NCBI GenBank assembly: GCA_977017575.1
Contig: CDRNVI010000059.1
Location: forward strand, 310,001-374,000
Reading direction: 5' to 3'
Source: Paramoeba atlantica
Taxonomy: Eukaryota > Protista > Discosea
DNA: 64,000 bases
This document shows, one piece after another, positions 1,948 to 50,289 of this stretch. The stretch's first letter is position 1; each line of letters starts with the position of its first letter. The notes under the pieces were generated by a model, which ran no database searches, had not been told where the DNA came from, and saw only the letters and a program-made list of their open reading frames with translations. Position numbers and translations under genes: made by a program.

Positions 1948-2568
1948 CGTTTTGAGCCACCGGAGTCCCTTTTATATTTTTTCTTTTATTCAACTGCTGC
2001 GGGTAATGATCTCGCATAATCTCACGTGATCTCGCATAATATCACGACCACATTAAAAGACATCTATCGTCGCTTCGCGGTACCTTTGTCGCTACAATTC
2101 TGTCTGATCTTTATCATGATCTCACATGATCTTATCAGATCTTACGCGGTTTCGCATGACCTTACGTGATCTCGCGTGATCTCATTTAGACATTACCTGC
2201 AGCCCCTCTATTATAATTATTCATTACTGTGTTTCTCTTTATAATTCCGCGTTTTTTGTTCACTTTTTATAATTAAGCAAGGGCTGATCAGAAGTGATAC
2301 AACCACCGCTATCCTTAATTACCGCTACCTTAAACCACGACGTATCTTCCCGAATTCGTAATTCTAAAAAAATTGCTTTCGGGGTCATTCATTCGTGGGA
2401 GATATAATTATTATTGATCGTTTCATACTATCACTTGCGTTTATCGAAAACGGATGGAATAATTATTTACTGAACATTTTAAGGCGTACCACCAATTAAA
2501 ACCCTACTGAGCGATATTATTCAGTGGTTTATTCAGTTTCTTTTTCATTAGCTTCTTTGTTTTTGTAT

Positions 2569-6490: not shown

Positions 6491-7068
6491 GTGGGTCAAC
6501 TATAGAAAGAGGTCAAAGTTGTACAAGGTTTAAAGAGAATTTAAAATTCTTAAAAAGAATTTAATATACATTGAGGAGAAAAAAAAAAACAATTTTTTTA
6601 TACATTTTTTTATTCATTTTGAGGATAAAGTTAAAAAAAATGAAACGAGAGATGAGCATACGCAGCACACACCAATTAACGAACTATCAGGCATAGTTTA
6701 CAATTTCGCGCTATATTGGTTATTCGTTGAATAATTAGCTTTTCCCTCAACTTATTACATATCGGTTCGAAATATTTTACATGGGCTCCCCAAGTTCCAG
6801 GGTAGGAACAAAGTAAGTAGGGGACTTGCTTGGAATATCATAAGCTTAATTATTGATTCGTCTTGTGGTACATCATGGTAATAGGCGTTACATGTACGAT
6901 GAAATCAATCTCAAATTCTCTGTATCCGCTTTTATTTCGTATAATCCTAACACGGATTAAATACGTTTCGTTGCGAAGATGCACGTACATGATGCACATC
7001 GCCTACAGGGCCTCTTTATTCTTTTACTACTTTTTGCTTAAAATCTAGTCTCTTTACAGTTTCCTTAC

Positions 7069-18795: not shown

Positions 18796-19839
18796 AATGC
18801 GTAAACTTAAAGTTTGCGTCGTATATCGGTTCTCCGCTCAATGGGTCCACCTATCTTCCTCACACTTCGCTTCAGTGATACTAGGTATCAACGAAGCGAC
18901 GCCGGGCTTGGAACCGGTATCTAGCGTGTTTAGGTAGGTGGTGATAAGTAATATTACCGTAGACCTCCCCCACGTAATAGAGGTTTGGCCTTTATTGGGC
19001 TGACGTCCAGTAATAGAGGTTTGGCTCGGGAGACCCACAGGACACACTCTTTTTGCTGAACCCAGCACAGCTTTGTAAACCGCTTCTTCCGTTTCGACCG
19101 CCGAGGGACTCGATATTCTTTCCATAAGAGCCTCGTCTCTCTACATTTGACACATTTTATAGTGTTCGAATAAATGATGATATTTGTGATGATTAAGGAA
19201 ATCAGAAATCACATGTAGCATGTACATGTGTAATTAGAACATTCGCAACTTATTGATGCACCATCATTCATACCATACAGTGCTCGTAATTTTTTGTGAA
19301 ATAAAAATACTGTAAAATAAAAATTTCTAAATGTTAATTCGTGAACAAATCTCGAAGTGATGTTCCGGCCTGTTTTTATTTGGTTGTTTTATTTTATTTT
19401 GGTTGTTCAATGAAAACGACCACCGCGTTTAACGAAGAATTGTATACGTAAGGAAATATACACGTGATTGTATGATCACCTAAAGATAATATTCTAATGA
19501 AGATATTCAATGACTGCTAAAAAAGCAGAAAAAGTAACGCGACCTCCTGATTCTGGGTGGTTTTCCGAATAACTTGCTCTGTCAAACACGCTTCTGACAT
19601 TTGTTCTTTGGTTCGAAGTTTCTTCCTTAGTTTCCTTCTCTATTTCAGCATGAGGGTGTAGATGACTACGGTCAAAGTACAGGAATATTGCATAAGTATA
19701 GGAATATTGCATAACTCTATTTTTGACCCCCCACCCCTTAATATGAGTTTCTTGATTTCGGTAGACAATTATAACCGTTGTATAGATCTGCGATTACACT
19801 GTCGGGAAACCACCTATTTTTTGTAATTTGAAACAAATT

Positions 19840-20260
19840 TTTACAAAGTCAAGGGTGGTATATTTCTCGAAAATATACGATTTATTTTATTTGTTACGTG
19901 TCTCACAGACTTGTATCCCCGGGAAAATGGAATACCGAACATATGGACGCTATAACGTACCCTAATCTGTCACTTTGAACTACTTTTACTTCAAATGAAG
20001 ACTTCACATATAAGGGGTGACCCTTCTAAAATGCTCTAAAATGGCCACTTTTCGTGGATTTTGCTTAAAAAAGCCCATTTTCACCTGTTTTTGGCTACTT
20101 TGGCGGGGTCACCCCCTATATGCAACTTTTCCATTTTTAGAAAATGTGATGTGCGTATATACTTGGAGTCTCATCTACAAGGAAAAGGATTTGTAAGATC
20201 CAATACAGGTGGGATCTTGCCAGGAGAAATTTTTCAAAAGTTAAAAAAAAATTAGAGGGG
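19840..20260. repeat. Dispersed Merlin-associated arm sequence (other copies 29172-29490, 38454-38772, ~54810-55258)
   Basis: tttttacaaagtcaagggtgg...taaggggtgaccc...ttagagggg is near-identical at 54810-55240. The other copies end in the gcaatattcctata TIR repeat. Confidence 0.8.
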
Positions 20261-20267
20261 GCCGCCC

Positions 20268-20400
20268 GCACATTTATAATGCATACTAAGCGGCACATTT
20301 ATAATGCATACTAAGCGGCACATTTATAATGCATACTAAGCGGCACATTTATAATGCATATAGCACATTCACATGCATATAGCACATTCACATGCATAAT
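20268..20400. repeat. 25-bp tandem repeat x4 then 19-bp x2, directly upstream of the IS30 ORF
   Basis: gcacatttataatgcatactaagcg at 20268, 20293, 20318 and (partial) 20343; gcacattcacatgcatata at 20363 and 20382. Confidence 0.9.
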
Positions 20401-20430
20401 TCTACGTTTTTCTCTCAGCTTTCTGTTTCA

Positions 20431-20955
20431 ATGGCACAATCAAAAAAGCGTATGGATCATGAAGATCGCACTAAAATAGAGGTGCTATACAACCAGAAAG
20501 GTTTCTCGCAGGAGGAAATAGCCGCAAAGTTGTCTGTAAATCAGTCAACGCTGAGCCGCGAGCTCACGAGAGGTATGCGTAACGGGGAGTATAATGCGAA
20601 GCGCGCGCAACGAGCGGCAAACACATCCATTTCCTCGCGGAAACACAAGCATCAGAAAATACAAGGTGATGTGCAAGAGAAGGTGATTGCTTTGCTGGGG
20701 AAGAGATTTAGCCCACAGCAAATCGCTACAACTCTCTTTAAGGAAGATGGGGTAAAGATTTCTCGTGTAGCCGTTTATGGATTCATCAAACGGGAAGACA
20801 GAGCAGGGAATTTAGTTCAGTTCCTGCGCCGGGGGGGAGGTCGCGGTAGAAGGCGACGGGGTACAAATCGCCTGAAAATACCGAATCGAACTGACATAAG
20901 CGAGCGCACAGGTTTCGACAATACTCGCTCCAGATATGGAGATTGGGAGTGTGAC
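20431..20955 (+). pseudogene. IS30-family transposase, N-terminal part (HTH to first catalytic Asp)
   Basis: SQEEIAAKLSVNQSTLSRELTRG HTH, FSPQQIA, IPNRTDISER, YGDWECD. Interrupted at 20955. Confidence 0.9.
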
Positions 20956-23900
20956 GGCACTTCCGCCGGCAGAAGAGGTTACAGTTCAAGTGTATTGATT
21001 TATGTATTGAGTTCGGTGGGGTGTAGCAAAAATCCATTATTTCATAGATGGAAGGTCATGAAAGTGAAGGATGAAGATAGGTGGAAGGTCAGTAGGAATA
21101 TGTGGTTCACCGACGGGAATGGGTGAAAGCATAAAAACGCGAGAGGAGTGTTCTGGGGGGAAAGGTGGAGAAGAAATCTCAACCGGTATGCTCTTTAGCC
21201 GAGAAGTGCAACATAAAGTTGGAATTGCAACAGAAAGGTGAACGACAACGACGTGCTACTAATAATTTTTGAAGACATTCATGATTTTTGCGATTGCACT
21301 TAAAGGAAGGACATGTTATATTAAGTTTTTTAGTAAGTGCCAACTTTACTGAGTAGTGACTAACTTTACGTTTTTTATGCATAAAACTGAAAATGGGGTA
21401 TACGTCAAAGAGAGGAAATTCAACCCTTTGACTTAACGTCAAAAACCGAAAAAGAGGGAAAAGTCAGGGGGGGGGGAGATCAGTCAGGGAGGAGGTGTAG
21501 CGTTGATGAAGGTGCAGAGTCGTGCGTATTTTTTAACCTTTGAAGACAAAATTAGGAACCTAATCTTTAATTTATCCTTTACGTATTCCTTTAACTACTG
21601 TTTTTACGAAATGTTTCTTAAAAAGCGAATTCTCCTTTGCCTCAACGGATTACAGAGGAACATTTTCCGCATTCTCAAAGCCGTCTACTTCTATTCGCGA
21701 ATCTCTATTCGGACATTTACGTCCTCTCTTTTTTCTAGCATCCTCTTTTGCGCGAAGCTCGCCCATTATCTCATCATGCGACTTCACGTCCTCCACGCAT
21801 TCCTTGTAGCAAAGTCTGTTCTGATACGCAACCCGTAACTGATTAAAATCTCGAGGAAATCTATACTGGTCCTCATTTTCTTTGACCACGGAGCTGAATC
21901 TTGATAAAACTTTCGGCCAAGGTATGTGCCTCGAAGATTTGTCGCGCACTTCATCGATGACACATTGCAGGAGCAAGCGCACTTCAAGGAGATTGAATTT
22001 CACGATCACGTTTCTTTGGCGAGGATCAATTCTTGGAGCATGTAAATGTGTTGCCAGGTGACATGCGTTGCTATTTCCTGTCGCGGTAAAATGTTGTACA
22101 GGTAAGTCATCAACCATTATGATCTCGTGCGCCCCCAAACCTACATCAAAATCTGTATCAAAAGTTTTAAATATTCTTGCACCAGGGATATCAAGTACGC
22201 AAACACCGCATATTCTGTGCCTCTGCGGAGTTGGTGATACGGAATCGAAAGGAACCACTAGATATGGTACGTGTGAAAGCTCGTGCAGAACGAGTACAGT
22301 GCTTGAAATGACATTGGCAAGAGAGCGAACTAGGGGAAGAAATAATTGCCAGTGCGAGACCTTGGTTATAACTTCCTCGACGTCATTCTCGGGCTTGCTC
22401 AAGTGTTCAAGAACTCGTTCGAACGTCGTATCTTTGTCCACCCGCGATGTATCGCACCGCAGAATACAGGGATCTCCCGCACACAAGTATTCAAGTGTGC
22501 TCATCATTGACGCTGCGGTGCACTCTCCACCTAGGAAACGCACCTTTTCCTCGTGCTTAGTTGGTGTAGCAGAAAGTGCGAAGTTAAATTCTACATCGTC
22601 TTTGCCAAGAAATACGGGCTCGCAACCAAACTTATTTTGCGCCCAGCTGCGAACATTACTCAGCTGATTGTCAGACAAGGAATGCGGGATAAGTGCATAT
22701 CCATCCCCAGATTCAACAGGGTGAACATATTGTGTGAAGAACAGTTCATGAGTCGTTAGTTGTTTCGCCACAGGGAGAAGTCCAAATGGACTATTACATA
22801 ATCTTGCATCGTCCGCCCCCAGGAAGAGAGAAGAGAAGGTTTCTTTCAAGGTTCGAAACAACAGAGCGTCGAAACACATCATATCCGGCGCTGATTTGAA
22901 TCTCACAGCACATTTCACATTACTTCGATAAATAAAGCTCCTTGTCAGCGCGTCTACAGTTTCTGCTGAGCTACGCGCGCGAAGCTTCACTTTAGCTTTC
23001 AAACGAGAATGAAAACTTTCACAAATGTTGGTTCCTCGGCTGGAACGATACACCATATTCTTATCCACGCGCGTCAAATTCACATCTGTAGGGTCACTGA
23101 GGCAGTCCCGCTCGATGTGTGCTATTGCGTACGGCCAGAGAGAAGCTAACTTGGGGTTCCATGTAAAGATGTCCGAATATTTTTCCTTCAGGAGTTCCAT
23201 TTTAGAAAGCAATTTTGCCGGACGTGGAATAACTTTCTCATGCGCATCAAGATGTTCCTTTTTTGGCAAAGCGATAGTAAGAGGCTCTACTACAGATCGG
23301 CAAAGCTCGGTGTAAAACATTTTCTGCCGATTTGATGCTGAAGTGCGTGGGATAACAGCTGCGAAACGGTGCAGCCAATGCCATAAATCGCATTTAATAT
23401 GTGCAGATGGAAAGTGGCGTTGTATTTTAGAACGCACTGTGCAACAGTTGTCAACATATATAGCCATTGCTTTGCTTCCTGGACGTGATGCTATGTTTGA
23501 AAGAACATTGTGCAAAGTGTCAAAACTTTCATTTCGAGTATATACGGCAGCCAAAATCTCACCAATTTCATTGTGAACAACAAAGTGAGAACGAAACGGT
23601 GCTTCCCCACGCAGTCGAATGCACTTTGCGGTCTCGAAAGTATGATCCGTTGCAAGCACTGTACCAGTCAGCTCGGACATATAGTTGTCACACTCCACCT
23701 GGCGCTGCTGGAGTAATGAAATCAAAACATCCTGAAAATGATCCACTGATGGAGTCATCCATTCTTGTGAAATTCGATTTGAAATCGCTTCCACGCAATT
23801 AGGATCCCAGCGAAATTCAAATTTTTCCGTGTGCTTTAATTCAAAAATGTGTCTTTCATCGCGCTTATTACTCAGATACTGCAACGTCCGCTGATGGTAA

Positions 23901-25028
23901 TCGACGGCATACACTTCTTGCAGAATACCTTGAAATTCACTCATATTAGAACCACTAGATCCTATTGCCATAATGGCCGTTGAAAGTCGTCTAGTCATCC
24001 CCAATTTTTCAGTTTTAATATTAGGAAAGGAATTTCGTGCCTTGTGGGACAGGCTGGAAATTAAGCTCTTTTCATCACTTGATATTACCTTACGACACTC
24101 AGTGCTACGACATTGATACACTTCACAAAGATAGTACATTGGTGTCGAAAGATCAAAAATCCGACGCACAGGAGAAAGCTTCATGAAAGTCAATCGCTCT
24201 TTGCAATGAAGACAGTGTAGGCTTTCTTTTTCGCCTTGGCGCATGGGCGCCCATATGATCCATGGCAAGGTAAAAAGCGTTTCCAATGAACTCCTAGGCT
24301 CCGGAGAAAAGAACCAAAGGGAAGTACATGTAGTTTTTGTTTTTAATTCTTCGTATGCCCTTCGAATTGCCGTGACTTGATGTGAAGACATTCCTGTTTC
24401 GAGCAAATGCGTCCAGTATTTTGTCACTTCTGTTCGTTCGTGTGTGGTTTCTTCTGGGCGAGAAGCGAACCGACAAAGCTCCGAATTTTCGGCTACTACA
24501 CGCGAAAGGGTGGTTGAAAGTTCGTTGTTCCTTTTTTCCATTTCCTCAATTTGTGTTTCTAGCTTTTTGATGCTTCCCGTAAGTTGCTTCTTTTCCTTGG
24601 CCATTGTTTGGATGACGTTCAGTAGGTCCGTTTCACAAGACATGACTTAAATAATCAGAAATCTAGAAATGATTTTTAGAGTACCAGGAAGGTTCAATAG
24701 TTTTGTTTGTAAAGTGATCATCTTGAACAGTCAGGGTACAATAGCTGAGGCTTTAAACTCTCAAATATGTACTAGAAATCGTTTCTGGGAAAACAATTTT
24801 GACGAAATTAAAAAATTATTGGACTACAAAAAAATTAGGTATGAAGTTCAGACTCAATAGTACACAACTTTCATAGGAACTATTAAGTTCAGACTCAATA
24901 ATAGAAACACACTTCAGTTACTATTGAGTTTACTATTGAGTTTTAGCAATCCAGATGCGTGCAACTCAATAGAGAACTCACTAGTGACTCTTCAACCCAA
25001 TAGTTGCTGTCACTATGGCGGAACTAAC
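20956..25028 (-). mobile_element. 4.07-kb DNA transposon, Dada-like (C/DxxH-class DDE), 8-bp TSD
   Basis: AGTGTGAC duplicated at 20948-20955 and 25029-25036. Short imperfect inverted ends (ggcacTTCCGCC / GGCGGAActaac). Subterminal actcaatag/ctattgagt motifs. Confidence 0.8.
21650..24643 (-). CDS. 997-aa DDE transposase (DUF6729-like Cys-rich N-terminus; Dada/MULE-like core), uninterrupted
   Basis: CLHC..C..C domain, ATDHTF, IYVDNCC, FP..HIKCDLWH (DxxH), RGTNICESFH. Confidence 0.8.
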   Translation of the reverse strand: MSCETDLLNVIQTMAKEKKQLTGSIKKLETQIEEMEKRNNELSTTLSRVVAENSELCRFASRPEETTHERTEVTKYWTHLLETGMSSHQVTAIRRAYEELKTKTTCTSLWFFSPEPRSSLETLFTLPWIIWAPMRQGEKESLHCLHCKERLTFMKLSPVRRIFDLSTPMYYLCEVYQCRSTECRKVISSDEKSLISSLSHKARNSFPNIKTEKLGMTRRLSTAIMAIGSSGSNMSEFQGILQEVYAVDYHQRTLQYLSNKRDERHIFELKHTEKFEFRWDPNCVEAISNRISQEWMTPSVDHFQDVLISLLQQRQVECDNYMSELTGTVLATDHTFETAKCIRLRGEAPFRSHFVVHNEIGEILAAVYTRNESFDTLHNVLSNIASRPGSKAMAIYVDNCCTVRSKIQRHFPSAHIKCDLWHWLHRFAAVIPRTSASNRQKMFYTELCRSVVEPLTIALPKKEHLDAHEKVIPRPAKLLSKMELLKEKYSDIFTWNPKLASLWPYAIAHIERDCLSDPTDVNLTRVDKNMVYRSSRGTNICESFHSRLKAKVKLRARSSAETVDALTRSFIYRSNVKCAVRFKSAPDMMCFDALLFRTLKETFSSLFLGADDARLCNSPFGLLPVAKQLTTHELFFTQYVHPVESGDGYALIPHSLSDNQLSNVRSWAQNKFGCEPVFLGKDDVEFNFALSATPTKHEEKVRFLGGECTAASMMSTLEYLCAGDPCILRCDTSRVDKDTTFERVLEHLSKPENDVEEVITKVSHWQLFLPLVRSLANVISSTVLVLHELSHVPYLVVPFDSVSPTPQRHRICGVCVLDIPGARIFKTFDTDFDVGLGAHEIIMVDDLPVQHFTATGNSNACHLATHLHAPRIDPRQRNVIVKFNLLEVRLLLQCVIDEVRDKSSRHIPWPKVLSRFSSVVKENEDQYRFPRDFNQLRVAYQNRLCYKECVEDVKSHDEIMGELRAKEDARKKRGRKCPNRDSRIEVDGFENAENVPL

Positions 25029-25036
25029 AGTGTGAC

Positions 25037-25492
25037 TTGATTGAAGGCGCGCAACATAGTGGCTATTTTCTCAGTTTAGTGGAGAGAAAAAGCCGCTACG
25101 GAGTTCTTCGGAAGTTGGAGAACAAGAAATCAGAAATTGTGGCCGAGGAGGTCACTCGTGCTCTGCAGGGGTTCCAAGTTTTCACTATCACGTACGACAA
25201 TGGAACCGAGTTCGCGAAACACGAACTAGTGAACGCTTCGTTGGGCTGTCAATCATTCTTTTGTCAGCCCTACGCAAGTTGGGAGAAAGGGGGCGTTGAA
25301 AATTACAATGGTCTTGTTCGTGATTTCTACCCTAAGCGAACATCGTTCACCCACATCACGCAAGCTGCGCTTGATACGACATCTGCAGCCATCAACGAAC
25401 GACCAAAAGATGTCCTGGAGAACAATTCGCCTATTGAATTGATCGAAAATATCAAGGTTATCTCCCCTCCTATGCTTCGTCCAGGCTTTTGA
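25037..25492 (+). pseudogene. IS30-family transposase, C-terminal part
   Basis: LIEG, LSLVERKSRY, TITYDNGTEFA, FCQPYASWEKGGVENYNGLVR, INERPK. Joins the N-terminal part in frame once the insert and one TSD are removed. Confidence 0.92.
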
Positions 25493-26359
25493 TGGACAGC
25501 TCACAGGATTCGCAGTAGTACGCTCGGATAGAATTCAAAGGATTTGCTCAAAAGATATTGCGTGAATATGGTAGCGCTCTTCAACCCTCATGAGTTCCAA
25601 TTTTGCAAGGATGTCAAACAAATTTGTTTCGAGGGGACATTCATATAGCAGGTCTGTTATAAACGCAAGCTGCTCTTTACAAAAAAAATTCCGATCAGGA
25701 GCCCAATGTAACATCCCAATGAATCGCAGGATTGGATATAATGTACGATTGAGGAACTTGGGAGTGTATCATCAGACGAAGTGCGATGAAGAGATGGGAC
25801 CGAGGTTTTCGTACATTCGTACTTGTCGCCTCCGTCTCAACGCGTGTCAAGACTTTTTTGATCTATACTCACCGTTTAAACCGCCGAATACCCCCCGAAT
25901 GCCTTCTGCAGTGCACTGATTTGGAAGAATATTCTATTCTCAGGTGTGTTACTGTGATGGGTTGTTGTTGCGATTGTTTGTAGTTGTCGGGATATGGCAA
26001 CATGGCCGATGCTTGTAGTAGAAGCATTGCTATGTAAATTCTACAACTTTGATAGAGAGACTTTGATAGAGAGAGAAGTTGGAGCATGAAAATTGTTTCC
26101 GGCATGCTTATTATACTTTGATGCCGATTGCTCTTTTTGCCCTCCTTTTTTACCAAGGAGTTTTTAGCGTCGCTTTGTCAAAACGGTCAGCATTAGGATG
26201 GGGAGGAAATGGGGGATTACTTTAGGAGTATGGCGTGTGCTGGCGAATTCATTCGTGAAACCTTTTCCTGATAGTGATAGATTATCCTGATAATGACAAT
26301 GATAGATTATCTGTATGCATCGTAGTAAATACACATCATTCACGAATTCATATCAAATA

Positions 26360-29169
26360 CAGTGGTTTCAGTTAATCTTGCCCCCCCCCGCTCGGAATTT
26401 TGATTTTTTTTATCCATTTTTGCTCATCTTTGCAGCATTGGACAGATCTCGTTCCCCTAGCGAAGAGCTTTGCCGCCTTTTTTTCATAGAGACCCCCTGG
26501 TGCCCCTTGGGTGACCCGAAAGTTGACCAAAATAATAAAAAATGATATTTTTTTACCATATCAAAAATGGAACGAAAAACGGATTTTATGTCCAAAAGTT
26601 AACTCTAAAGGAAAAGAACTAGTATCCGGAATGGCCTCCATTGTTTTGCAACACCTTTTGAAGTCTATTAGGGACTGAATCAATTGTGTTGCACACTTTA
26701 CGTTTTTCTTGAGGACGTTTTAGAATCTGAAAAGCTTTTTTAATGGCATCGGCGAGGGTAGCATGATTGTGGGGCTTAATTTTTTTCTTTATGATACCGT
26801 TCATTTGTTTCCAAACATTTTCTTTTGGATTTTAATCAGGCGAATTCGCTGGCCAAGACAATTGTTTAATACGATATTTAATCAATTCACCTTTTGCCAA
26901 GTTATGGGTGGTAGCATTATCCATTTGCACAGTCACATTGTCAACGTGGTCTTTGAGATAATGTAAAAACCCATTAGGCTTCTGAAAGGAGTCAAGGATC
27001 ACTCCCCCAGTGACCTTGTGCGCGTTTTCATAAGTTGTATTGTCATTGGGTTCAAACACGTGCAAGAAAAATCCGTGTTCTACACTAATACCCATCCAAG
27101 CCATTACCCCCTTCCCCCCATACCACCTACGGTTTCTGCAGCGAGGTTTTCTTTGGCACCCTTGAGGTCCAATGAAAAACTGAGACCCATGAACCCCACA
27201 GGTAAACAACTTTTCATCGGTCCAAATGATTTTGTTTAAATCTTCTTTAGGCCATGTAAGCAATTCGTTTGCTAATCTCAAACGCTGCGACTTGTGTTCC
27301 TCAGTTAGGTCACAGTTCGGCGACTTAGCCCATCTACCGTAATCAATATTTTTTAAAATAGTTCTTATTTTGTTTCAGGGTTCGCAGAAACTATAAAACT
27401 ATCAATATAGTACTATATAGTTACTATAAACTTTTTTCGAAAACTATAAAAAACTATATTTTTTTGTTTCACATTTTAGGCACTCCGAAGCTCACCAACA
27501 CGCCATAAATACACGGCGAATTCATTTGTGTACGATTTTTCTTATTTTTAAACCCGAAAATTGATGCCCGAAATAAAAGTTACGAGGGGTAGTTTCTGCA
27601 AAGATTATTTTATTGAACTGCTGCACACGGAGGAAAGTAAACAAGCGGTTGAATGTAACTAGTGTCAGGAGGGGACGTACCCCAGTCCCATCGTGTGGCC
27701 TTGACAGATTGCCTTGTGCGAATCTTGCGTCCCGAACATCTTCTCACTGCATCGCTGTCGCCGCGCGTTGGCTGGAGCCACCGACGTTATGTCTTGGGAC
27801 TGAATAACTGCTGCTCACAATTCTATGAGTTTGAATAAATACAATCATATGAGTCTGAATAAATTACGCGGTGTGTTGTCGAGTGGAGAGTTTGCACTTC
27901 CTTTCACTCCTTTCGCGTGCGTTTCATTGCTATTTCCGAGGAGATGACACACTAGTTGATGATATTTTTCGGTGGTGATGGAATCGCGGGGAAGAGGAAG
28001 GATGTTTCGACAGCTATGTAACCCAGGATAAAGTGGACGAGGGAGGTTCTAAAAGCACCTTTAAACCACCACAAAAATGGAATGATATCTCCCGGTTTGT
28101 AAAGGATTCCGACGTGCCAAAAGAATCTTTAACGGACAAACCCTTCCATTTTTATGGTGGTTTGCCAAAGGTGCTTTTAGTATCTCCCTTGTCCACTTTA
28201 GCTTGGGTTACATTTTTTTCAGAATTTGTTGTCATATCATACGTATGTAAGCGTGTAAGAACGCATGTAGAGGCGTGTGTATGTCCTTCACAAGCGGAGA
28301 GGACTCAAAAAATATCACTTGTAAAGTGAAAAAAACTTTATAGTTTTCTTATAGTTTTATAGTAAAATATAGTAAATATAGTACTATATAGTAACTATAT
28401 TCAATGAAAAAAACTATATTTTACTATATTATAGTTTCTGCGAACCCTGTTTTGTTTAACGAACATTTATACCCCATATTCAGCACTTGCTCGTGTATCC
28501 AAGTATAAGTTAAGCAACCATCGTACGTTTCGTTTTCATCATCCACAATTTTTTTTACCATGTCCTTAAACCGCCTTGATGATTTTTTTCCTGGGGATTT
28601 TTGGGGTGTAAGATCTTCTCCTTCCTTCCACAGGTTAACAATTCTTCTTATGGTGCGACGGTCACGTCCGAAATTATTAGATAATTTATGTATATGTTGC
28701 TTTATTATTTCTTTTCTCTCGCAAAGAGGTAATGCCACGGTTCCTTTGTGGGATATTGGGGGATTGTCTTCTCTTTTGTCATTCCATCCTTGTACGTACT
28801 CCCCCTGTTTGGGGTTAGAGGGTCTGGTCTGCATAATGTAGAGGTGTTGACTATATTAAATTAGGCGATAGGGATGGTACTAGACATAGAGCTTTCAAAT
28901 TATCAATTTAGAACACTATTACTCGTACTTACATGTTCAAAATGTACAAAAAATCGGGAAAATGTGACAAAAAATGGTTGTGTACACAGAAAACGTCCAA
29001 AAAAAACAGTGTTTTTCGGACCCAGGGGGCACCAGAGGGTCTCTATGAAAAAAAGGCGGCAAAGCTCTTCGCTAGGGGAACGAGATCTCTCCAATGCTGC
29101 AAAGATGAGCAAAAATGGATAAAAAAAATCAAAATTCCGAGGGGGGGGCAAGATCAACTGAAACCACTG
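26360..29169 (-). mobile_element. Tc1/IS630-like element with long TIRs, TA target; transposase pseudogene (DD32E, one TAA) split by a MITE
   Basis: TA|CAGTGGTTTCAGTT(A/G)ATCTTGCCCCC ~150-bp inverted ends. Coding pieces 28834-28450 and 27375-26619 join in frame (..SLNKIRTILK..WTDEK..MDNATTH..WPANSPD*NPKE). Confidence 0.88.
27376..28449. mobile_element. Non-autonomous hAT-type element (MITE), 1074 bp
   Basis: TIR CAGGGTTCGCAGAAACTATA at both ends. 8-bp TSD TTTTGTTT at 27368-27375 and 28450-28457. Subterminal ctata/tatag motifs. Confidence 0.88.
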
Positions 29170-29558
29170 TATAAGGGGTGACCCTTCTAAAATGCCCTAA
29201 AATGGCCACTTTTCGTGGATTTTGCTTAAAAAAGCCCATTTTCACCTGTTTTTGGCTACTTTGGCGGGGTCACCCCCTATATGCAACTCCATATGCTACT
29301 CCCTCTATATGCAATTCCATTTTTATAAAATGTGATGTGCGTATATACTTTGGAGTCTCATCTACAAGGAAAAGGATTTGTAAGATCCAATACAGGTGGG
29401 ATCTTGCCAGGAGAAATTTTTCAAAAGTTAAAAAAAAATTAGAGGGGCTCTGCAATATTCCTATACTTATGCAATATTCCTATACTTCGGCACACCGAAG
29501 TTTTAGGCACCGATTTCAACTTTTGCCAAAATTAGGTGCGGGGTGCTATGGGAACTCA

Positions 29559-30420
29559 CCTTTGCTCCCGGTGAGGCCCCGGAGTTGCGAGAGGCCTCCA
29601 TACCCCACAACTACCACCTTCCCCCCCTATTTAGCGGGGGTCGCGCGAGCGACCCCTGATAAATGGGGGGAAGGTGGTAGTTGTTTTGGGGGAAATGAGA
29701 GGCCGAACGCACGGAGGGGCCGGCCGGGCCACTGAGTCACGTGAAAGTGTGACCTAAAACTAAACCTAGATTTTGTTTACCCGTCTGCACAACAGAACCG
29801 TAAATAGCACGTAAAGATGGTTGGCCGAGGTACAGAATAAATTTACCTTTGCTCCCGGTGAGGCCCCGGAGTTGCGAGAGGCCTCCATACCCCACAACTA
29901 CCACCTTCCCCCCCCCCTATTTAGCGGGGTTCGCGCGAGCGACCCCTGGTAAATGGGGGAAAGATGGTAGTTTTGGGGGAAATGAGAGGCCGAACGCACG
30001 GAGGGGCCGGCGGAGTCACTGAGTCACGTGAACGTGTGATACCCAAAAACTAAACCTATACTAAACCAATTCACAGTATTTTGTGACAGTAGACGGCTAT
30101 GCAATATTCCTATACTTATGCAATATTCCTATACTTATGCAATATTTCTATACTTGTGCAATATTCCTATACTTATGCAATATTCCTATACTTATGCAAT
30201 ATTCCTATACTTATGCAATATTCCTATACTTATGCAATATTCCTATACTTATGCAATATTCCTATACTTCCACCCCCCACAACTACCACCTCCCCCCCCC
30301 TATTTAGCGAGCGACCCCTGGTAAATGGGGGGAAGGTGGTAGTTGTTTTGGGGAATATGAGAGGCCGAACGCACGGAGGGGCCGGCCGGGCCACTGAGTC
30401 ACGTGAAAGAGTGATACCCA
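29559..30420. repeat. About 287-bp module containing a 76-nt near-perfect hairpin, 3 copies (duplicated at 38841-39705; another at 49655-49832)
   Basis: caactaccaccttccccc..attta..ggggtcgc-gcga-gcgacccc..taaatggggg.aaggtggtagttg at 29608-29683. Confidence 0.85.
30099..30274. repeat. 19-bp tandem repeat (Merlin TIR-type unit) ending in an internal Merlin end; duplicate at 39381-39556
   Basis: tatgcaatattcctatact x~9, ending cttccacc as at 47451-47458. Confidence 0.88.
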
Positions 30421-30729
30421 AAAACTAAACCTAGATCTTGTTTGCACAACAGAACCGTAAATGGCACGTAAAGATGGTTGGCCGGGGATTGTGGTTTGGC
30501 CGCAGGATTGTGTATTTATTTTCCTATGCATTGTCACGTTCTTTACCTTTTGGGGGGCAAATTGTGAACGTCGACCAGAAAAGGGGCATTCTAAACACTG
30601 TCAACATGGGTAACCAACTTGAAGGTATACAGGATATGAAATGAAATAACCTGTACTTTCTGCGGGAAGAAATTTCCTTCTGCGTGAAGAAATAACGACG
30701 GTGCACATGGACACAAAAAATAACGAGCC

Positions 30730-30996
30730 TTACTCCGAGTCACTACTTTCGTCTTCTTCGTCGCGGTAGAAACTAACACCTTTGCAGAATGTACGAATAT
30801 CTTGGAAGATGCGACGTACACGAGAACCTCCGTTGACAGAGAGTGTCGCGTTAGAAATTTCTGCGAAAAACTTCATTCGGTGAGCGCGAGATATTTCATC
30901 GTTGCCAAGACGGCCCCCACGAGCTTTGCGTTCCTTTTAGGAGGCCATTGGCATGTTCCACGGTATTAGTGTGGATGCCGGAGACTGTTACCCAAT
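30730..30996 (-). pseudogene. Merlin transposase C-terminal piece (duplicate of 40014-40280)
   Basis: WVTVSGIHTNTVEHANGLLK, then a frameshift, then RGGRLG..RVRRIFQDIR. Confidence 0.8.
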
Positions 30997-33622
30997 CACT
31001 CACTCACTCACTCACTTTACACTAAGCCCCGGAATAGGGCATTAGTTAAATATCTATCTGTATTTACGCTCAATACATTCATCATCTAACTCTCCAACTG
31101 ATTTCGTTTTCACGTCGATTGCCTCGTACTCGGTGCGCTTCGAAAGCGAAACACACAGCACCTTGCGTACACTGGATTTTATTGTCCCATCTTGGTTTCC
31201 GTCAAAGGGGATATTTATCCGCGTTGTGAGGTCGCGTCTCGTGGTCTACCTTTCTTGGTGCGGTTCGCGGCGGTACTTAATTGTGGGCCAGGCGCGGGGC
31301 AATGCTGTGATAAGTGCCGTTCTAGTGTAGTAGCCGAGGTCTTGCGCCTTTTCTCTGAAAGAGCGCCGAAAAGAGCTGTCTTTGCCAACGTGTCACACTT
31401 ATCGTTGTATGGGTTGCCGCAATGCCCCTTTACTTTAATCACGTAGAATTTGACGCCATTCTCCTCTAAGGTCTTTATTGCACCACCTAAATCCCAATAA
31501 ATGTCGCTGTTTGGAAGGCCATTGTATCCTATTAGGTAATACTTTCGCCGCGTATTGCGTATAAAATGCCATACTATCCACGAATCCGTATGCAGTACGA
31601 TTGTACCCTCAACTTTGGGTGCTCTCTGAATAGCTAGTAGTGCCGCATAAAATTCCGCTCTTTCTGGCGATGGTGTGCCAAGAATCTCCTTACAAACAGT
31701 AGAACTAGCCACTTCATGGCCACACTGAACTTCAACAATCCCAATTCCAATCTTTCCGATGTAACCAGAACTAACTGAGGCGTCGGTATAAAGGTGTAGA
31801 ACGTTGTTGTCACTTGAGAAAGGTGTTGGACCTTCTTCAGCGTACTGCAGGGCTGAAAGATCATTTTCCCGCTGTGCAGCAGCTGCAATGCGGTGCCAAC
31901 CGCTTGATCTACAACCAATATACATTTTAGGATTCTCTAGCCCCATTTGAAGTTTTTCAACATGTTTTTGCCAACATTTTCTATCCTCCGCATATACCAG
32001 GGCTTCCTCGACTACTAGTCCCATATCCCCGGTGCAAGCTTCGGATGGAGAACGAATTCGACTCTTTTCTTTAACGCGCCACTGCATCAGTTCCGAATAT
32101 ATCTCTGAATGCCGTATTAAGTGCCCTACAAGACGAGCCCGGTTAACTTTGTGCAGTGTGGAAAAAAGTGGGGTGTCTATATATAAGGCGGATATTGGCA
32201 CACTTTTCCCAGAATGATCCAGTTTCGGACACTTACAAATAATACGACGCATCTTATTTACCTGTATATCTACCCATTTCAATGTGGTTTCGCTCAACAC
32301 TAGTGTGCCCGAGTTGTAATTTAGGATAGGGTATACGAGGGCATCGAACAAACGAAGTTTTGTCTTGACGCTCAAGGGCGATACCCATATGCCCCGAAAT
32401 TTTGAGAAACCTGCCCACGTAAGTCGCAACCTGTCCCTAATACATGCCAATGGTTCAGTTTCATGGAAAAGATGTCCCAGATACCTGTAGGAAAGTACTT
32501 TGGGCACCGTCCCCAAAGGATCGGATATCATTTCATCGGGGCCTCGTTGCCTTCCTAGTTGCATCCACGCTGTTTTAGCAGGGCCTACTGCTATTCTTAG
32601 GTTCGCGGAGAGGGCTTGTTCCGCTGTATCCTCAATCATACTCTGTAGATCAGCCTTGTTATCTGAAAAGAAAAGGAGATCATCAGCATAATTTAGATCC
32701 GTAAGACGTGTTTCCCTCAGGCCTCTGCTCTTGGTACCTTTGGATGATAGAAGGATGCCATGGGATTTTGAATCAATAGCTTTGCTTAATATACGATCCA
32801 GAACCATTACGAAGAGGTAGGGAGCGAGGACATCCCCTTGAAGAATGCCGGTTGTAATGGGGAATGTTTCTGTTAAACCTTATGGTGTTCGCACGACCCC
32901 TCGCATATTCCGATATACTGACATAATCATTTCTCGCAATTTCGGTCCAATGTGAAACGCCACTAGGGATGCATGAATGGCACTAAATGAAACGGATGGA
33001 AAAGCTTTCGCAAAATCTACAAAACCAATGCACATCCCGTTTCCTCTTAATGCTTTTACTCGTGCTTCGTTGAGAATCGCCTGGGCTTGCATTGTCGAAC
33101 GGTCAGGTCTGAACCCATATTGATTATGGCGAAGCACAGGCTCTACATACGGACGAATTCGTTGTAATATTAAACAGTTCATAAGTTTAACAACACAATT
33201 TACTAAGCATATGGGCCTCCAATTCTTTAAAAGAGTCAAGTCACCTTTCTTCGGTATCGGAACTTGTAGGACGTCACCCCAAACTTCCGGAGCCAATCGC
33301 GTATCGTAAACGCGGTTGATAATGCTGAGCAACCACTTTCTAAGATAATCATTATCAACGATGCACGCAAAAGCCTCCATGGGGATTTCATCCTTTCCCG
33401 GTGCCTTACCCCTCCCAAAGTGTGAAATTCCGCTTCGAAGCTCTTCCTCAGTGAAAGGGGCGTCCTCAAGTGTGTTTGTTGGAAGATTCGCCTCTAAGAA
33501 TCTTATATTGTCGTCGCCCCCTGTGTCTCCAGCAAAAGCTTCAAAAAACGTTTTTATCTCCGCCAGCCTCTGTCTGTTTGAGGTCCCCGGTATGTTGAAG
33601 TCTGCTCGATCAACTCCACATA

Positions 33623-35062
33623 CTGTGACCCCCCCCTTTATATGCACACGTTTTTGGGGTTTGTGCATATTAAGGGGGGGGGGGGGTAAGAGGGGGAAGA
33701 ACCAGCCCCTCCGGGAAAAAAATTGCGCCGCTTCGCGACGCCTTTATTTCCTGTGCGTTTTTCGAACTTGATTGATTGATTGATTTTAAGGGCATGTATC
33801 CCATAGGGACGTACCCTCCCGGAGATAGCCGGGCACTAATTTTTTTATTATTCCAAAATACACTTATTATTCCAATTTTTTTAGTATTCTGCCACCTGAA
33901 AGTTTTCTCAAATTATATTCCATGGATGCCTTTGTGCCTGGCTACATAGAGAATCTTTTGTATCTATCTTTAGCGAATGCACAAGAACGGCGCGGTTACG
34001 GCCTAGGGATCGTAGAAGGCTCAAGCGATGACGATAGTGAAGTGAATTCTGTTTCTTCCGATGAAGAACATGGTAGCGATATAAAAAATGTTAGCCTCGA
34101 AACCCCTGATGGGGTTCTACCACTGATGACGGCAGTGATAACGAGGAAGGTTTGGTTGATTCCAGTGGGGCCCGTAAAGTAAAAGTTGCCAAGCGTTCTA
34201 GAGTCGTTCTAGATTCTCGGAGAAACGTACGCCGCGATGTTCCTTTCGTTGTGAAGCATAAGACTGTTTTCAAAACAGAAATGGCGAACGCACCACAGAA
34301 ATGTCTCAAACGCACCACAAAGCTATGGCAACAGTACAACAATGGATGAGAAGAACCTTTGGTGAATTATACACAGTGCATTCTAAATCTCAACTAAAAA
34401 AGTGGGATGCAGAAATCAACCGGCAACTTTCCAGTAACCTAGGCGAGGAACGCCTGCTAAAGCTTAAGTTCTTGATGGTGGATGGCGCCACTGTCAACCA
34501 TGTTGCCCGTGTGAATTGCAAAGGTTTCTTAAAATCCATTTACGATCGTATTGACCCGGTGGGAGAAGAGGACCTAGGAAACATACAGCGCGGAATAACT
34601 CAAAAGTACCGTGTGTCACTATTATCTTGCATAGGACACATGTTAAATAATGTCTGCAAAACGGCGTTTCAACCCTACTCAAGGAATTTAGTGAAAGCAA
34701 AGATGCTCCTATGGCCACACACGTTTGCCAAATGTTGGAGCATCTATACGAAATTTCCGAAGGCACAGGAGCACCACAAGGATTACGATCATCCCTTTTG
34801 CACCACAAGAAAAGACTAGATAAGAATCATAACATGCGTCTCTGGAAACAGGTAATGTGGTTTCGACCAAGTTCGGTTGTGCTGTTCGGTCGGCCAATAC
34901 GTCAACATGCTTTGTGATATTGGCGAACTGAAATTTTGTCTGCGCAACCACCGTGAAAAAAAATTATTTTTTTTTGGGAGGAAAAAAAGTCCCCTTTAAC
35001 CAAAATTTGTGCATATTAAGGGGGGGGAGGGAAGGGGGTGCATATTAAAGGGGGGGTCACAG
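33623..35062 (+). mobile_element. Internally deleted TA-duplicating DNA transposon inside LINE copy 1
   Basis: TIR CTGTGACCCCCCCCTTT flanked by TA. Removing it restores the LINE frame (WRAVKEI-CGVDRADF). It is 626 bp shorter than the copy at 52281-54346. Confidence 0.88.
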
Positions 35063-36711
35063 TATTTCTTTTACTGCTCTCCATGGGCTGGCGTGATTTT
35101 TCTTCAGCTTAGACTCTAGGACTTCACAAGACCTAGTTATAGCGTCCTCGATTGCTCCCCTGTTGTGTGATACTAGTTCATTAAAGTCCTTATGCCTTCT
35201 GCTTGAAAAAAATGAAAATGTTGCGTAGGTTATCTGTTTCAGCACCTTGCAATCCTTCAACAGGTGCCTGTATATCAAGAGATATTTTTGTGATTGGTTT
35301 CGGAATTTCCTTTCCCGAAGATCGAAGGCAAGAGGCAAGAAGATCCCAGGAAGGAAGATCTTCTGTATGCAGTTGCGCTGCGACCTGTTCACAAATTCTG
35401 TTGTTAAACTTCTCTGCATGTTCTGGGTTTGATAATTGAAACCAGTGTATTTTCGGTCTTTTGATGTTGGACGATATCTTCCATTTGAATCGAATCTCTG
35501 CTCGCACAAGAAAGTGCACTGTCGGCGTAGGAGCGGCAAAAACTTAATGATGTCGCAGAGCGCATGCAAAGCGTGAGCACACTGCAATGTGATCCAACTG
35601 GCGTTTAGCATCATTAGGCAATATGCATGTCCATACTCGCTTGCTAGGGCATAAGGAGTGTCCTGATTTGCAATCTATCCCTTCCAAAAGCCCCTTCAAC
35701 CTTTCAACAGCAAGTTCGTCTTCTTCTGTCGTTTTGCTGAAAGTGAGAGGTGCATTTAAGTCCCCAAGTAGAAGTGCGGGTCTTCGAGGGGCTTTGCCTA
35801 CTGCTTCGTGAAACGCGTTTGTCAAAGAAATATCAAACTCTTGTTTGGCCTCCTCTGGGGAGTCACGCGTCGGCCCATATGCGTTGAGCATAAAGGCTGA
35901 CCCTCCTTCGATGTTGAACTCGCCGGCCATTATCCTATCATTTACTTTCCACGCCTTTATTGGCTCTTGCGTGATGAACCCCATACCGTTATACCCGTTC
36001 ACTGCAGACATAAGGTAGATGAAAAAGATTTTATTCCCGTGTCGAAGCTGGCGCTTTAAAATATCAAATCCTTCGCCAGAAATAAAAGTAAACCTTGTCT
36101 CCTGGAGATCCAGTATATGCAAGTTGGTTTGTGCCATGTATCGCACAATCTCGTGCAATCGAGCAGAAGCTTTCAGTTTGAAAACGTCGTCACCTTCAAG
36201 TTTCAATGATGTCGTATTAAGAGTGCCTACAGCCAGACACTTCTTCACAGCAGACCCTTTCGGGTCGTCGTCGCGTAGGGCATGCTTGCCACACAGTACC
36301 CTAGTTTTCCGTGCTTTTCTACGGTTGTTCGAACGCCCAGGTTTTCGAATGCGTGCTCCGCATAACACGATTCGCGAATCATACGGCGGAAAGGGAAGCG
36401 TTTCCGATCGCTGGTGGTACTTTACCCGCCAGCGACCTAGCTGAAAGAGGAAACCAGGTCCTCGTTGAGTTACAGTGCCCTTCCAAATCCGAAACTCCGC
36501 ACTGCTCGCGTATCTCCAGCAGAGTGCGATGTTGTAACCTGGGCGAAGAATTTTACTAATGCTCATCACTGCACGGGAGCGAAGTTTAGCATGCCCGTCT
36601 GACCCCAACATCGGGTCAAACAGAGCACCCCGACCTAACGCGGACCTAACCAGAAGTTTAATAATTCCTAGCTGTGCAGGCCCGGACGCCTCCGCCATAT
36701 TTTTGAAAATG

Positions 36712-37093
36712 TTCAAAAAAACAAAGGTCTTCAAAAAAACAAAGGTCTTCAAAAAACAAAGGTCTTTAAAAAAACAAAGGTCTTCAAAAAAACAAAGGTC
36801 TTCAAAAAAACAAAGGTCTTCAAAAAAACAAAGGTCTTCAAAAAAACAAAGGTCTTCAAAAAAACAAAGGTCTTCAAAAAAACAAAGGTCTTCAAAAAAA
36901 CAAAGGTCTTCAAAAAAACAAAGGTCTTCAAAAAAACAAAGGTCTTCAAAAAAATAAAGGTCTTTAAAAAAATAAAGGTCTTCAAAAAAACAAAGGTCTT
37001 CAAAAAAACAAAGGTCTTCAAAAAAGCAAAGGTCTTACAAAAAAACAAAGGTCTTCAAAAAAACAAAGGTCTTCAAAAAAACAAAGGTTTTCA
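36712..37093. repeat. 17-bp tandem repeat (about 22 units) in the LINE 5' region
   Basis: aaaaaacaaaggtcttc units; duplicate at 45994-46375, with 2 more units at 46572-46606. Confidence 0.95.
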
Positions 37094-47390: not shown

Positions 47391-47537
47391 TATTTTGTGA
47401 CATGATTAGACGGCTATGCAATATTCCTATACTTATGCAATATTCCTATACTTCCACCGATGACTACAACGCCAAAATTCGTTTCGATGAGTACTCATCC
47501 AAACTACAACACCAGTGTCCATAATACAGTACGCAAA

Positions 47538-49534: not shown

Positions 49535-49832
49535 GGCCAAAGTAAAGGGATATTGCATAAGTCAAGGAATATTGCATAAGTCAAGGAATATTGCATAAGT
49601 CAAGGAATATTGCATAAATCAAGGAATATTGCATAAGTCAAGAAGCACTTCTGTCCTGCTCCCGGTGAGGCCCCGGAGTTGCGAGAGGCCTCCATATCCC
49701 ACAACTACCACCTCCCCCCCCCCCTATTGAGCGGGGGTCGCGCGAGCGATCCCTGATAAATGGGGTGAAGGTGGTAGTTGCTTTGGGGAATATGAGAGGC
49801 CGAACGCACGGAGGGGCCGGCCGGGCCACTGA
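49535..49832. mobile_element. End of a second Merlin-family element: TIR-like 19-bp repeats followed by the hairpin module
   Basis: GGCCAAAGTAAAGGGATATTGCATAAG, then ggaatattgcataagtcaa x4, then the ctcccggtgaggcccc module. Confidence 0.7.
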
Positions 49833-50289
49833 GGTAGGACAGTCCTAGGACCTCCTATGTTACTTCTAGCATGTCAACACGTACAACCGTTATATGAGAA
49901 ATACTTTTACAAGATAGGGGAATGTAATATCTTGCAAATACTAGTGTACAGTGTCGTTCCAGCCATATTGCAACAAACATTTCGCTCTTAGGAAAGGTCC
50001 TCAGGTGAAATAAGTGGTGGAAACGCATCATTTAGGGTCAGGACTTTAGTGCAAAATTAGTTTGTTGAAACAGTTTTAGGATTTTTCAATTTGCTTTTGA
50101 GTCAAAATGTTGGGCGGGAAGTAATTTTAGAACCCAATTTTTGTCGAAAATCTCCTGTAAAAAATTTACGAACGACACTACATAATTGCCCACTAAGGCA
50201 CAACGCATTTGAAAAACGACTGATGAGTTGACAGAAAGATCTATCGTATTTTTTCCACCCCAAATTTTCAAATTTTCATCAACAAGCGT

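Follow-up and report, generated by a model that had tools for sequence, protein, structure and literature searches.

We have found that the interrupted transposase gene in the window (the whole 64,000-nucleotide stretch of DNA analysed here) very probably marks an inactivated member of a DNA transposon family that resides in a eukaryote and encodes a bona fide IS30 DDE enzyme, a family that would have arisen by a single transfer followed by radiation and rebuilding. The segments 20431-20955 and 25037-25489 are two halves of one IS30-family transposase (Table 1). The first ends YGDWECD and the second begins LIEGAQH, neither contains a stop codon, and they match positions 1-139 and 141-266 of the NCBIfam profile NF033563 (IS30 family transposase; 77.5 and 135.1 bits), which leaves the two adjacent along the model. 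Pfam assigns HTH_38 and HTH_32 to the N-terminal half and rve, as a weak match, to the C-terminal half, and the DDE triad of the joined protein consists of D175, D229 and E263, the second D (YDNG) being separated from the E (VEN) by 33 residues. IS30 transposases combine N-terminal HTH domains with a DDE triad whose hallmark is a spacing of about 33 residues from the second D to the E. Removal of 20956-25036 restores the in-frame join of the two halves, and the joint is read through uninterrupted (...YGDWECDLIEGAQH...) in the natural paralogues P0002 (on L002) and L009, which lie on other contigs of the assembly; the joined form is also present in public DNA runs of the same organism, with 8 letters common at the joint. 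Both the stop-free frame and the IS30-type HTH and D-D-E motifs had been noted by an earlier, sequence-only reading, and the uninterrupted copies that it suggested seeking in the genome exist.

That reading also held that an intact 326-aa ORF could be restored. Although the halves do join in frame, this copy has lost 1 nt near 25486 by comparison with L002 and L009; the resulting frameshift removes a C-terminal tail that the other subfamilies conserve and whose out-of-frame remnant lies at about 25489-25518. Judging from the paralogues, 326 aa is thus not the ancestral length of the transposase.

Table 1. Features of the IS30-like copy and its surroundings (positions are those of the window)
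Feature	Position	Strand	Details
Left flank: unrelated dispersed repeat, stops exactly at start of IS30-like element	19835-20260	+	Repeat copies elsewhere in window
Left arm of IS30-like element	20261-20398	+	7-nt tip GCCGCCC, 3.7 copies of 25-bp unit, 2.4 copies of 19-bp unit
Leader with pyrimidine tract and AG directly before ATG	20399-20430	+	Candidate trans-splice acceptor region (inferred)
Transposase, N-terminal half	20431-20955	+	175 codons; two HTH domains; first catalytic D is last codon before break
Target-site duplication of insert, copy 1, AGTGTGAC	20948-20955	.	8 bp
Inserted DNA transposon, 4,073 bp	20956-25028	-	Intact 997-aa ORF at 21650-24643 (minus); Pfam DUF6729; imperfect ~12-bp terminal inverted repeats
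Target-site duplication of insert, copy 2, AGTGTGAC	25029-25036	.	8 bp
Transposase, C-terminal half	25037-25492	+	Codons to 25489 number 151; second D, E, premature stop
Last 53 bp common to paralogues; homology stops at 25545 and the element is cut off at 25545/25546	25493-25545	+	Homology to paralogues

Homology of the window copy to L002 begins at 20261. Further copies of the left-flank repeat occur at 54815-55242, 29170-29447 and 38452-38729, and loose ends at 20260 in the DNA runs reflect other copies of this repeat that continue differently. The left arm contains the 25-bp tandem repeats already noted ahead of the gene (100% match, 20268-20360) and a 19-bp repeat at 20354-20398, and most subfamilies examined carry the arm-unit core GCACNNTNATNNTGCAT in their arms as well. 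About 770 bp of L002, comprising the spacer, a palindromic module and the inverted right arm, are missing from the whole window, and scans of the whole window for a right arm (by BLAST, by inverted repeats and with the 25-mer, allowing as many as 3 mismatches) found none; the copy is therefore truncated rather than misread, which explains why no right terminal repeat could be located before. It follows that the copy was not simply, as had been proposed, intact until the transposon inserted, for it also lacks its right arm and carries the frameshift near its 3' end. The block that holds it recurs on another contig at 99.6% identity. The gene neighbourhood is eukaryotic (14-3-3, an M16 peptidase (MPP) and an RRM/zinc-knuckle gene), and nearby LINE (RT, RNase H, endonuclease) and DDE_3 ORFs agree with the earlier description of a locus embedded among eukaryotic transposons. 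We note that 'type 2' 19-bp arrays elsewhere in the window (29451-30269 and others) adjoin LINE sequences with no transposase nearby; we considered that these may be arms of another IS30 subfamily.

The 4,073-bp insert has empty sites in L002 and L009. Its 997-aa protein matches only DUF6729 in Pfam (E 1.4e-14), its nearest Atlas clusters are DUF6729 and Mutator-like, and a literature search on DUF6729 returned nothing relevant. The Dada superfamily is defined by 6-7-bp duplications, a lack of terminal inverted repeats and small-RNA gene targets (Kojima and Jurka 2013, PMC3706591). Like Dada elements, whose DDE transposase has a DxxH motif and zinc fingers, the insert appears to encode a large DDE transposase, with Cys clusters and a putative DxxH-type motif (CDLWH) recognized by eye; in fungal relatives DUF6729 is found together with a DnaQ-like exonuclease, an association described for some Dada elements. 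Unlike them, it has an 8-bp duplication, imperfect terminal inverted repeats and a target site within a transposase ORF. The Dada-like label given to it by the sequence-only reading is thus plausible from the domain and the motif but fits the Dada definition poorly in duplication and target, and the insert might be called Dada- or Mutator-clan-like.

The design of the family is seen in its complete members, which measure 2.1-2.5 kb and whose ends are both inverted tandem arrays of a conserved 17-25-bp unit, the arms being roughly 45-500 bp long; such inverted arms stand on either side of the gene in L001, L002, L006 and L091. Under one boundary rule, 3-bp target duplications are present in two of the three informative elements (ATT for L001, GGT for L002; GGG for L006 is uninformative), and no matching 3-bp duplication is seen in L091, a possibly rearranged copy of 4 kb that also contains other material. 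The suggestion that other copies would reveal terminal repeats and target duplications was therefore productive for L001 and L002, though not for the duplication of L091. L001 and L002 share the 2-3-bp target duplication of IS30 elements, the right end of the window copy being lost, but complete members of the family lack their compact form of about 1.0-1.25 kb with a single 20-30-bp inverted repeat per end. The 200-bp spacer module is 98.5% identical between L001 and L002, far more conserved than the genes, and could be a mobile repeat in its own right that does not belong to the element design. In IS30 transposition the two ends abut in a circle or tandem dimer; no abutted right-left junction was found among the loose ends in the DNA runs, but contigs drop rare forms.

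The genome contains at least 5-6 IS30-like subfamilies that share 53-77% protein identity with one another. Full-length paralogues score 210-252 bits on NF033563 (cut-off 80), against 59-64 bits on the IS481 model (cut-off 224) and at most 30 bits on the IS3 model (cut-off 160), and IS21 is likewise far below its cut-off. Both D residues are invariant in an alignment with bacterial members and the E is kept in all except P0184, whose ORF looks intact but has K in place of the catalytic E. A dN/dS of 0.065 between L001 and L004 indicates that the subfamilies evolved under purifying selection; for other subfamily pairs dS is saturated and dN is 0.23-0.44. GC3 of the IS30-like ORFs (0.40-0.50) lies inside the range of host genes (0.38-0.64) and overlaps that of some bacterial relatives, and so does not discriminate. 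We saw no identical copies at different loci, and any current activity would thus be putative. Every eukaryote-hosted member comes from one assembly.

The host, whose MPP is 57% identical to that of Perkinsela and 44-46% identical to that of Trypanosoma, is by this comparison a kinetoplastid nearest to Perkinsela. Phylogenetic analysis against bacterial IS30 transposases places nine eukaryote-hosted proteins in one clade (100/100 support) on a stem of about 1 substitution per site, nested in a 100/100 clade dominated by Verrucomicrobiota. The closest known systems are IS30-family insertion sequences of Verrucomicrobiota, for example a 1,214-bp IS present in four copies on a MAG contig (CAWCAA010000002; L018, L020-L022), which ends in 25-bp repeats and shows 3-bp duplications at each of the four sites. 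These bacterial elements resemble the eukaryote-hosted ones in their NF033563 match, two HTH domains, DDE triad with 33-residue spacing, 3-bp duplications and protein sequence (42-47% identical), and they form the nearest branch in the tree. They differ in being about 1.2 kb long with one 25-bp repeat per end and no arrays, whereas the eukaryote-hosted copies are larger, have arrayed arms with terminal sequences unrelated to those bacterial repeats, and possess a leader rich in pyrimidines, a C-terminal tail that the bacterial proteins lack and a long 3' spacer.

Since the protein belongs to a family otherwise known only from prokaryotes, and since no independent contig spans 20260/20261, the left boundary, where repeats break short-read contigs, we asked whether the IS30 gene could come from a co-sequenced bacterium through contamination or chimeric assembly. 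We regard this as extremely improbable. On contigs of 60-200 kb, IS30-like copies have eukaryotic genes on either side; L002, for example, is on the sense strand within a same-strand run of eukaryotic housekeeping genes, with Mago nashi, a DEAH helicase, RPS17, a kinesin and PIG-P on one side and HSP90 and Vps53 on the other. The window copy is itself interrupted by a eukaryotic-type transposon whose empty sites exist elsewhere, the element is found in DNA runs from three samples (with left flanks that differ between copies), and the best bacterial proteins are at most 47% identical over their full length and 54% over the C-terminal half, far from the near-identity to a bacterial IS30 that a contaminant might show.

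Nor is it likely that the subfamilies stem from several independent transfers from related bacteria. Their great divergence and saturated dS would fit such a history, and a bacterivorous or bacteria-associated host would presumably have had repeated opportunity, but the eukaryote-hosted proteins are monophyletic with a long common stem and share an arm-unit core, an arrayed architecture, a pyrimidine leader and a C-terminal tail, the last of which is absent in bacterial relatives. The same long stem and deep internal divergence imply long residence and could instead point to an old, vertically inherited eukaryotic superfamily that has been overlooked, and absence from protein databases is weak evidence given that transposons often go unannotated. 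Against this reading, which we consider slightly less probable again, members of the clade were found in this assembly only, in a search of 5.8 billion proteins and 1.84 billion cluster representatives; the clade lies within a Verrucomicrobiota-dominated subgroup and not outside bacterial IS30 diversity; and of all the IS families sought in eukaryotes in a survey of 430 genomes, IS607 alone was found (Gilbert and Cordaux 2013, PMC3673617).

Transfers of bacterial IS into eukaryotes are very rare, and the few known cases, IS607-like fragments and, in Adineta vaga, an IS5-like element present as one silent copy, did not flourish (PMC3673617). These too are prokaryotic IS families integrated in eukaryotic chromosomes after transfer; yet IS607 uses a serine recombinase and the IS5-like element is a silent single copy, whereas here a DDE IS30 lineage has multiplied, with subfamilies under selection and a new end structure. 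Several eukaryotic superfamilies have IS relatives (Tc1/mariner-IS630, Mutator-IS256, Merlin-IS1595, PIF/Harbinger-IS5 and ISL2EU-IS4; PMC3673617), and to these we add the IS3/IS481-like IS3EU/Ginger transposons (PMC2836005). All are, like the present family, eukaryotic DNA transposons whose transposase has a bacterial IS counterpart, but none is tied to IS30 and they are widespread, while the IS30-like family has been seen in one genome so far. An IS3EU/Ginger transposase would be closest to IS3/IS481 or retroviral-type integrases; here the IS30 model scores far above these and the rve match is weak. Literature searches on IS30 in eukaryotes, including kinetoplastids, found no published eukaryotic IS30 element or superfamily, in agreement with the earlier statement that none is recognized, and searches on Prokinetoplastina transposons found nothing relevant. 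The entry and spread of a bacterial-type IS30 element in a eukaryote is very rare and apparently undescribed.

The sequence-only reading had described a horizontally acquired, eukaryote-adapted IS30 lineage. This is largely supported, in that the locus is on a eukaryotic chromosome, is far from bacterial sequences and has eukaryote-specific features, but the locus is no lone acquisition: it is one decayed copy among the many of a family that comprises several subfamilies. Most likely, a Verrucomicrobiota-type IS30 was transferred once into the lineage of the Perkinsela-nearest kinetoplastid, where it would have transposed and then radiated into the subfamilies while its protein was kept under purifying selection. 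At each end, a unit of 17-25 bp whose start resembles the terminal repeat would have been multiplied into a tandem array, with between 2 and about 24 copies, that presumably offers the two N-terminal HTH domains several sites to bind. A spacer of 0.6-1.3 kb would have been gained 3' of the gene and a short Ser/acidic tail added to the protein, and integration would still yield 3-bp target duplications, as in bacterial relatives. The window copy was inactivated by three lesions, namely the DUF6729 transposon directly behind the codon for the first catalytic Asp, the missing right arm and the 1-nt deletion near the end of the ORF.

A pyrimidine tract would have taken the place of any Shine-Dalgarno site ahead of the ATG, and expression may proceed by read-through polycistronic transcription and spliced-leader addition. 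The tract and AG noted earlier before the ATG of the window copy are indeed there, and pyrimidines make up 65-88% of positions -40 to -1 in those eukaryote-hosted copies whose N-terminus is complete, compared with 38-47% in bacterial relatives. It is plausible that the tract acts as a trans-splice signal, but three subfamilies have no AG between it and the ATG, and the trans-splicing model is for this reason not straightforward. The canonical trypanosomatid spliced-leader 3' motif was not found in the window, and under relaxed search conditions only L006 and L009 yielded a leader-like sequence, about 34 nt long. The one run of the organism labelled as RNA has zero coverage of 19900-25600 and says nothing on transcription.

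An IS30 lineage has here colonised a eukaryotic genome and diversified in it under selection, with changes to its ends, leader and protein tail. Tentatively, and with rather more doubt than confidence, we suggest that it may represent an undescribed, IS30-derived eukaryotic superfamily, born by transfer from a bacterium to a kinetoplastid, still mobile and adapted to polycistronic, trans-spliced expression, with multi-site arms that recruit many transposase molecules. Such a family would add an IS30-derived group to the eukaryotic transposon superfamilies and, if the IS30 copy-out/paste-in route has been kept, would present that bacterial pathway working in a nucleus. Its compact transposase, with putative repeated binding sites, is a possible genetic tool for kinetoplastids. 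The family also offers a natural experiment in the changes that a bacterial transposon needs to work in a nucleus, in a host that requires a spliced leader on every mRNA.

We find in this stretch one member of an IS30 transposon family that resides in a eukaryote in multiple copies, with a protein under selection, arrayed arms and short target duplications. The two transposase pieces in the window (see the table), read from the ORF listing and directly from the sequence, are neighbouring parts of one protein, because positions 1-139 of the NCBIfam IS30 model NF033563 match the first and positions 141-266 the second. Pfam places HTH_38 and HTH_32 in the N-terminal piece, with a weak rve match in the C-terminal piece, and the catalytic residues are kept: D175, encoded immediately before the break, D229 (YDNG) and E263 (VEN), with 33 residues between the latter two. 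On the IS30 model, whose cut-off is 80 bits, full-length family members reach 210-252 bits; on IS481, IS3 and IS21 they fall far below cut-off. The sequence-only reading had described the same two pieces, motifs, upstream repeats and pyrimidine-rich leader with its AG, which sits 11 nt 5' of the ATG, and that description is borne out.

The gene is interrupted cleanly by an inserted transposon: the 8-bp target duplication AGTGTGAC lies at 20948-20955 and 25029-25036, flanking 4,073 bp. Uninterrupted copies, which the earlier reading had proposed to seek, exist at L002 and L009, paralogous loci that lie on different contigs of this assembly, and the joined form is present in contigs of three public DNA runs from the same organism, where the 8 letters fit both sides. 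The insert's minus-strand ORF of 997 aa is intact, and its sole Pfam match is DUF6729; in the Atlas its closest clusters hold DUF6729 and Mutator-like proteins from animals and fungi, and one of these clusters also contains a DnaQ-like exonuclease domain, a combination known from some Dada elements (PMC3706591). This makes the earlier description of the insert as Dada-like a reasonable lead. Dada elements, however, are defined by 6-7-bp duplications, a lack of terminal inverted repeats and small-RNA gene targets (PMC3706591), and since the insert has none of these three traits we do not assign it to that group. We also note that in the DNA runs the insert has about 2-4 times the word depth of the IS30 body, and that the arm repeats (window 20282-20472) reach 10-100 times the depth of the transposase body in each of the three; both the insert family and the arm units are thus far more abundant than the window's IS30 subfamily.

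The window copy was held to be an intact 326-aa gene until that insertion, but it carries further damage. Its homology to L002 and L009 stops at 25545, whereas these two go on matching each other; the absent part, about 770 bp in L002, comprises a spacer and then left-arm repeats in inverted orientation, and no such inverted repeats occur anywhere in the 64-kb window. The right arm, which had not been located, is therefore lost rather than hidden. Alignment of the 3' ends also reveals a 1-nt deletion near 25486, beyond which L002 and L009 continue into a ...RILMDSSQDSQ-type tail, so the 326-aa reading stops early and the ancestral ORF had about 335 codons. Similar Ser/acidic tails end the proteins of other subfamilies, and bacterial relatives lack them. 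The split copy belongs to a larger duplicated block, as window 20557-32000 recurs twice at 99.6% identity, spaced about 12 kb apart (L007, L008), on the 28.9-kb contig ctg3742c, where both the copy and its insert are found; this contig is flagged circular and probably represents a tandem array that the assembler collapsed. Separately, window 29170-38451 is repeated from 38452 onward (offset about 9.28 kb).

The host is a kinetoplastid eukaryote. Uninterrupted same-strand ORFs in the window encode a 14-3-3 protein, a mitochondrial processing peptidase and an RRM/zinc-knuckle protein, alongside LINE and Tc1-like ORFs, and the peptidase shares 57% identity with its counterpart in Perkinsela sp., 54% with the one from a free-living prokinetoplastid transcriptome and 44-46% with Trypanosoma proteins. 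At L002 the IS30 copy lies in sense within a same-strand run of housekeeping genes, preceded by Mago nashi, DEAH helicase, RPS17, kinesin and PIG-P and followed by HSP90 and Vps53. Sequences of about 34 nt that resemble the kinetoplastid spliced leader and contain CAGTTTCTGTAC head unrelated downstream sequence at L006 and L009. The one at L006 lies inside the 3' end of an IS30-like ORF, where the protein leaves the family pattern, which suggests a leader-capped retroposed insert.

Protein searches covering 1.84 billion cluster representatives and 5.8 billion proteins placed all eukaryote-hosted relatives on long contigs from a single ENA assembly. These are P0002, the L002 paralogue (97% identical), four IS30-like proteins of 318-340 aa (P0153, P0183, P0184 and P0185; 56-76% identical to P0153) and several fragments. 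P0184 (L005 3102-4124) is an intact 340-aa ORF in which Lys replaces the catalytic Glu (GGVKRF versus GGVENF), and is probably inactive though open. Near identity to a bacterial IS30, an outcome the sequence-only reading had allowed for, is not seen: the best bacterial proteins, mostly from Verrucomicrobiota (Akkermansiaceae, Verrucomicrobiales, Puniceicoccaceae, Opitutales), share no more than 47% identity across the whole length and 54% within the C-terminal half. The nine eukaryote-hosted sequences group as a single clade in both maximum-likelihood trees (SH-aLRT 100 in the one, 100/100 in the other) on a stem of about 0.6-1 substitution per site, nested in a wider clade that itself has 100/100 support and consists mainly of Verrucomicrobiota IS30s. 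Between subfamilies synonymous sites are saturated and dN is 0.14-0.44; dN/dS is 0.065 for L001 versus L004, and 0.65, on few changes, for the window copy versus L002, as expected for copies that decay once inserted. We found no published account of IS30-derived elements in eukaryotes, in keeping with the earlier statement that no recognised IS30-derived superfamily is known; when 430 eukaryotic genomes were surveyed for every IS family, only IS607-like sequences turned up, and that survey's list of families with eukaryotic counterparts (IS630, IS256, IS1595, IS5, IS4) does not include IS30 (PMC3673617).

Coordinates of transposase pieces, repeat arrays, palindromic modules and leader-like sequences
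Feature	Location	Strand	Description
Transposase N-terminal piece	window 20431-20955	+	175 codons from ATG at 20431 to ...YGDWECD
Transposase C-terminal piece	window 25037-25489	+	151 codons from LIEGAQH..., stop 25490-25492
25-bp unit array	window 20268-20360		upstream of ATG; 3.7 perfect copies
19-bp unit array	window 20354-20398		upstream of ATG; 2.4 copies
~200-bp palindromic module	L002 11325-11590; L001 7350-7555; L006 7846-8135; L004 7385-7542		between transposase gene and right arm in several subfamilies
~200-bp palindromic module	window 29498-29737, 29845-30024, 38780-39019, 49657-49833		elsewhere in window
19-bp unit arrays	window 19675-19714, 29451-29487, 30098-30269, 38733-38769, 39381-39552, 47415-47453, 49540-49642		TATGCAATATTCCTATACT and variants
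19-bp unit array	L003 3817-4007		TATGCAATATTCCTATACT and variants
Spliced-leader-like, ~34 nt	L006 ~6926-6958	+	contains CAGTTTCTGTAC
Spliced-leader-like, ~34 nt	L009 ~2180-2212	-	contains CAGTTTCTGTAC

Six of the loci with IS30-like relatives (L001, L002, L004, L006, L090, L091) have tandem arrays immediately 5' of the gene, with inverted copies also beyond it at L001, L002, L006 and L091; L003 has an array on the right side only, and none was found at L005. Complete elements (L001, L002, L006) span 2.1-2.5 kb. Arm units are 19-25 bp and differ by subfamily, most sharing a core of the form GCACNNTNATNNTGCAT, of which those of L006 and L003 match only the first part, and a 7-nt tip before the first unit is kept within each of two subfamily groups. 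The module with an internal palindrome is 98.5% identical between L001 and L002, whose transposases are about 66% identical, so either it is a mobile repeat in its own right with a preferred insertion site, or it belongs to the element and has been homogenised. The TATGCAATATTCCTATACT-type arrays adjoin LINE sequences and this module, and their unit is loosely like the arm units; they may be parts of non-autonomous IS30-type elements or LINE tails. Bacterial IS30 prefers palindromic hot spots, and we note that the L002 element, in a single case that recalls this preference, sits within a short palindrome (L002 9585-9700, 11808-11827; CCCCCGTTTAAGCGC on the left, its complement on the right).

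When element boundaries are set by the tip and first unit, flanking triplets match at L001 (ATT) and L002 (GGT); the match at L006 (GGG) is uninformative and the triplets at L091 differ. A close bacterial relative with four copies in a Verrucomicrobiae MAG is, by comparison, a 1,214-bp IS whose 25-bp terminal repeats are imperfect and which is flanked by 3-bp duplications at each of its four sites. Pyrimidines make up 65-88% of the 40 nt before the ATG in eukaryote-hosted copies versus 38-47% in bacterial ones, and such a tract would direct spliced-leader addition, a weak reading because an AG separates tract and ATG in the window/L002 subfamily alone. Transcription would come by read-through of host polycistronic units. 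Given the triplet matches and the duplications of the bacterial relative, the chemistry of integration looks conserved, while the ends have been rebuilt into multi-site arms whose repeated units the HTH domains would bind.
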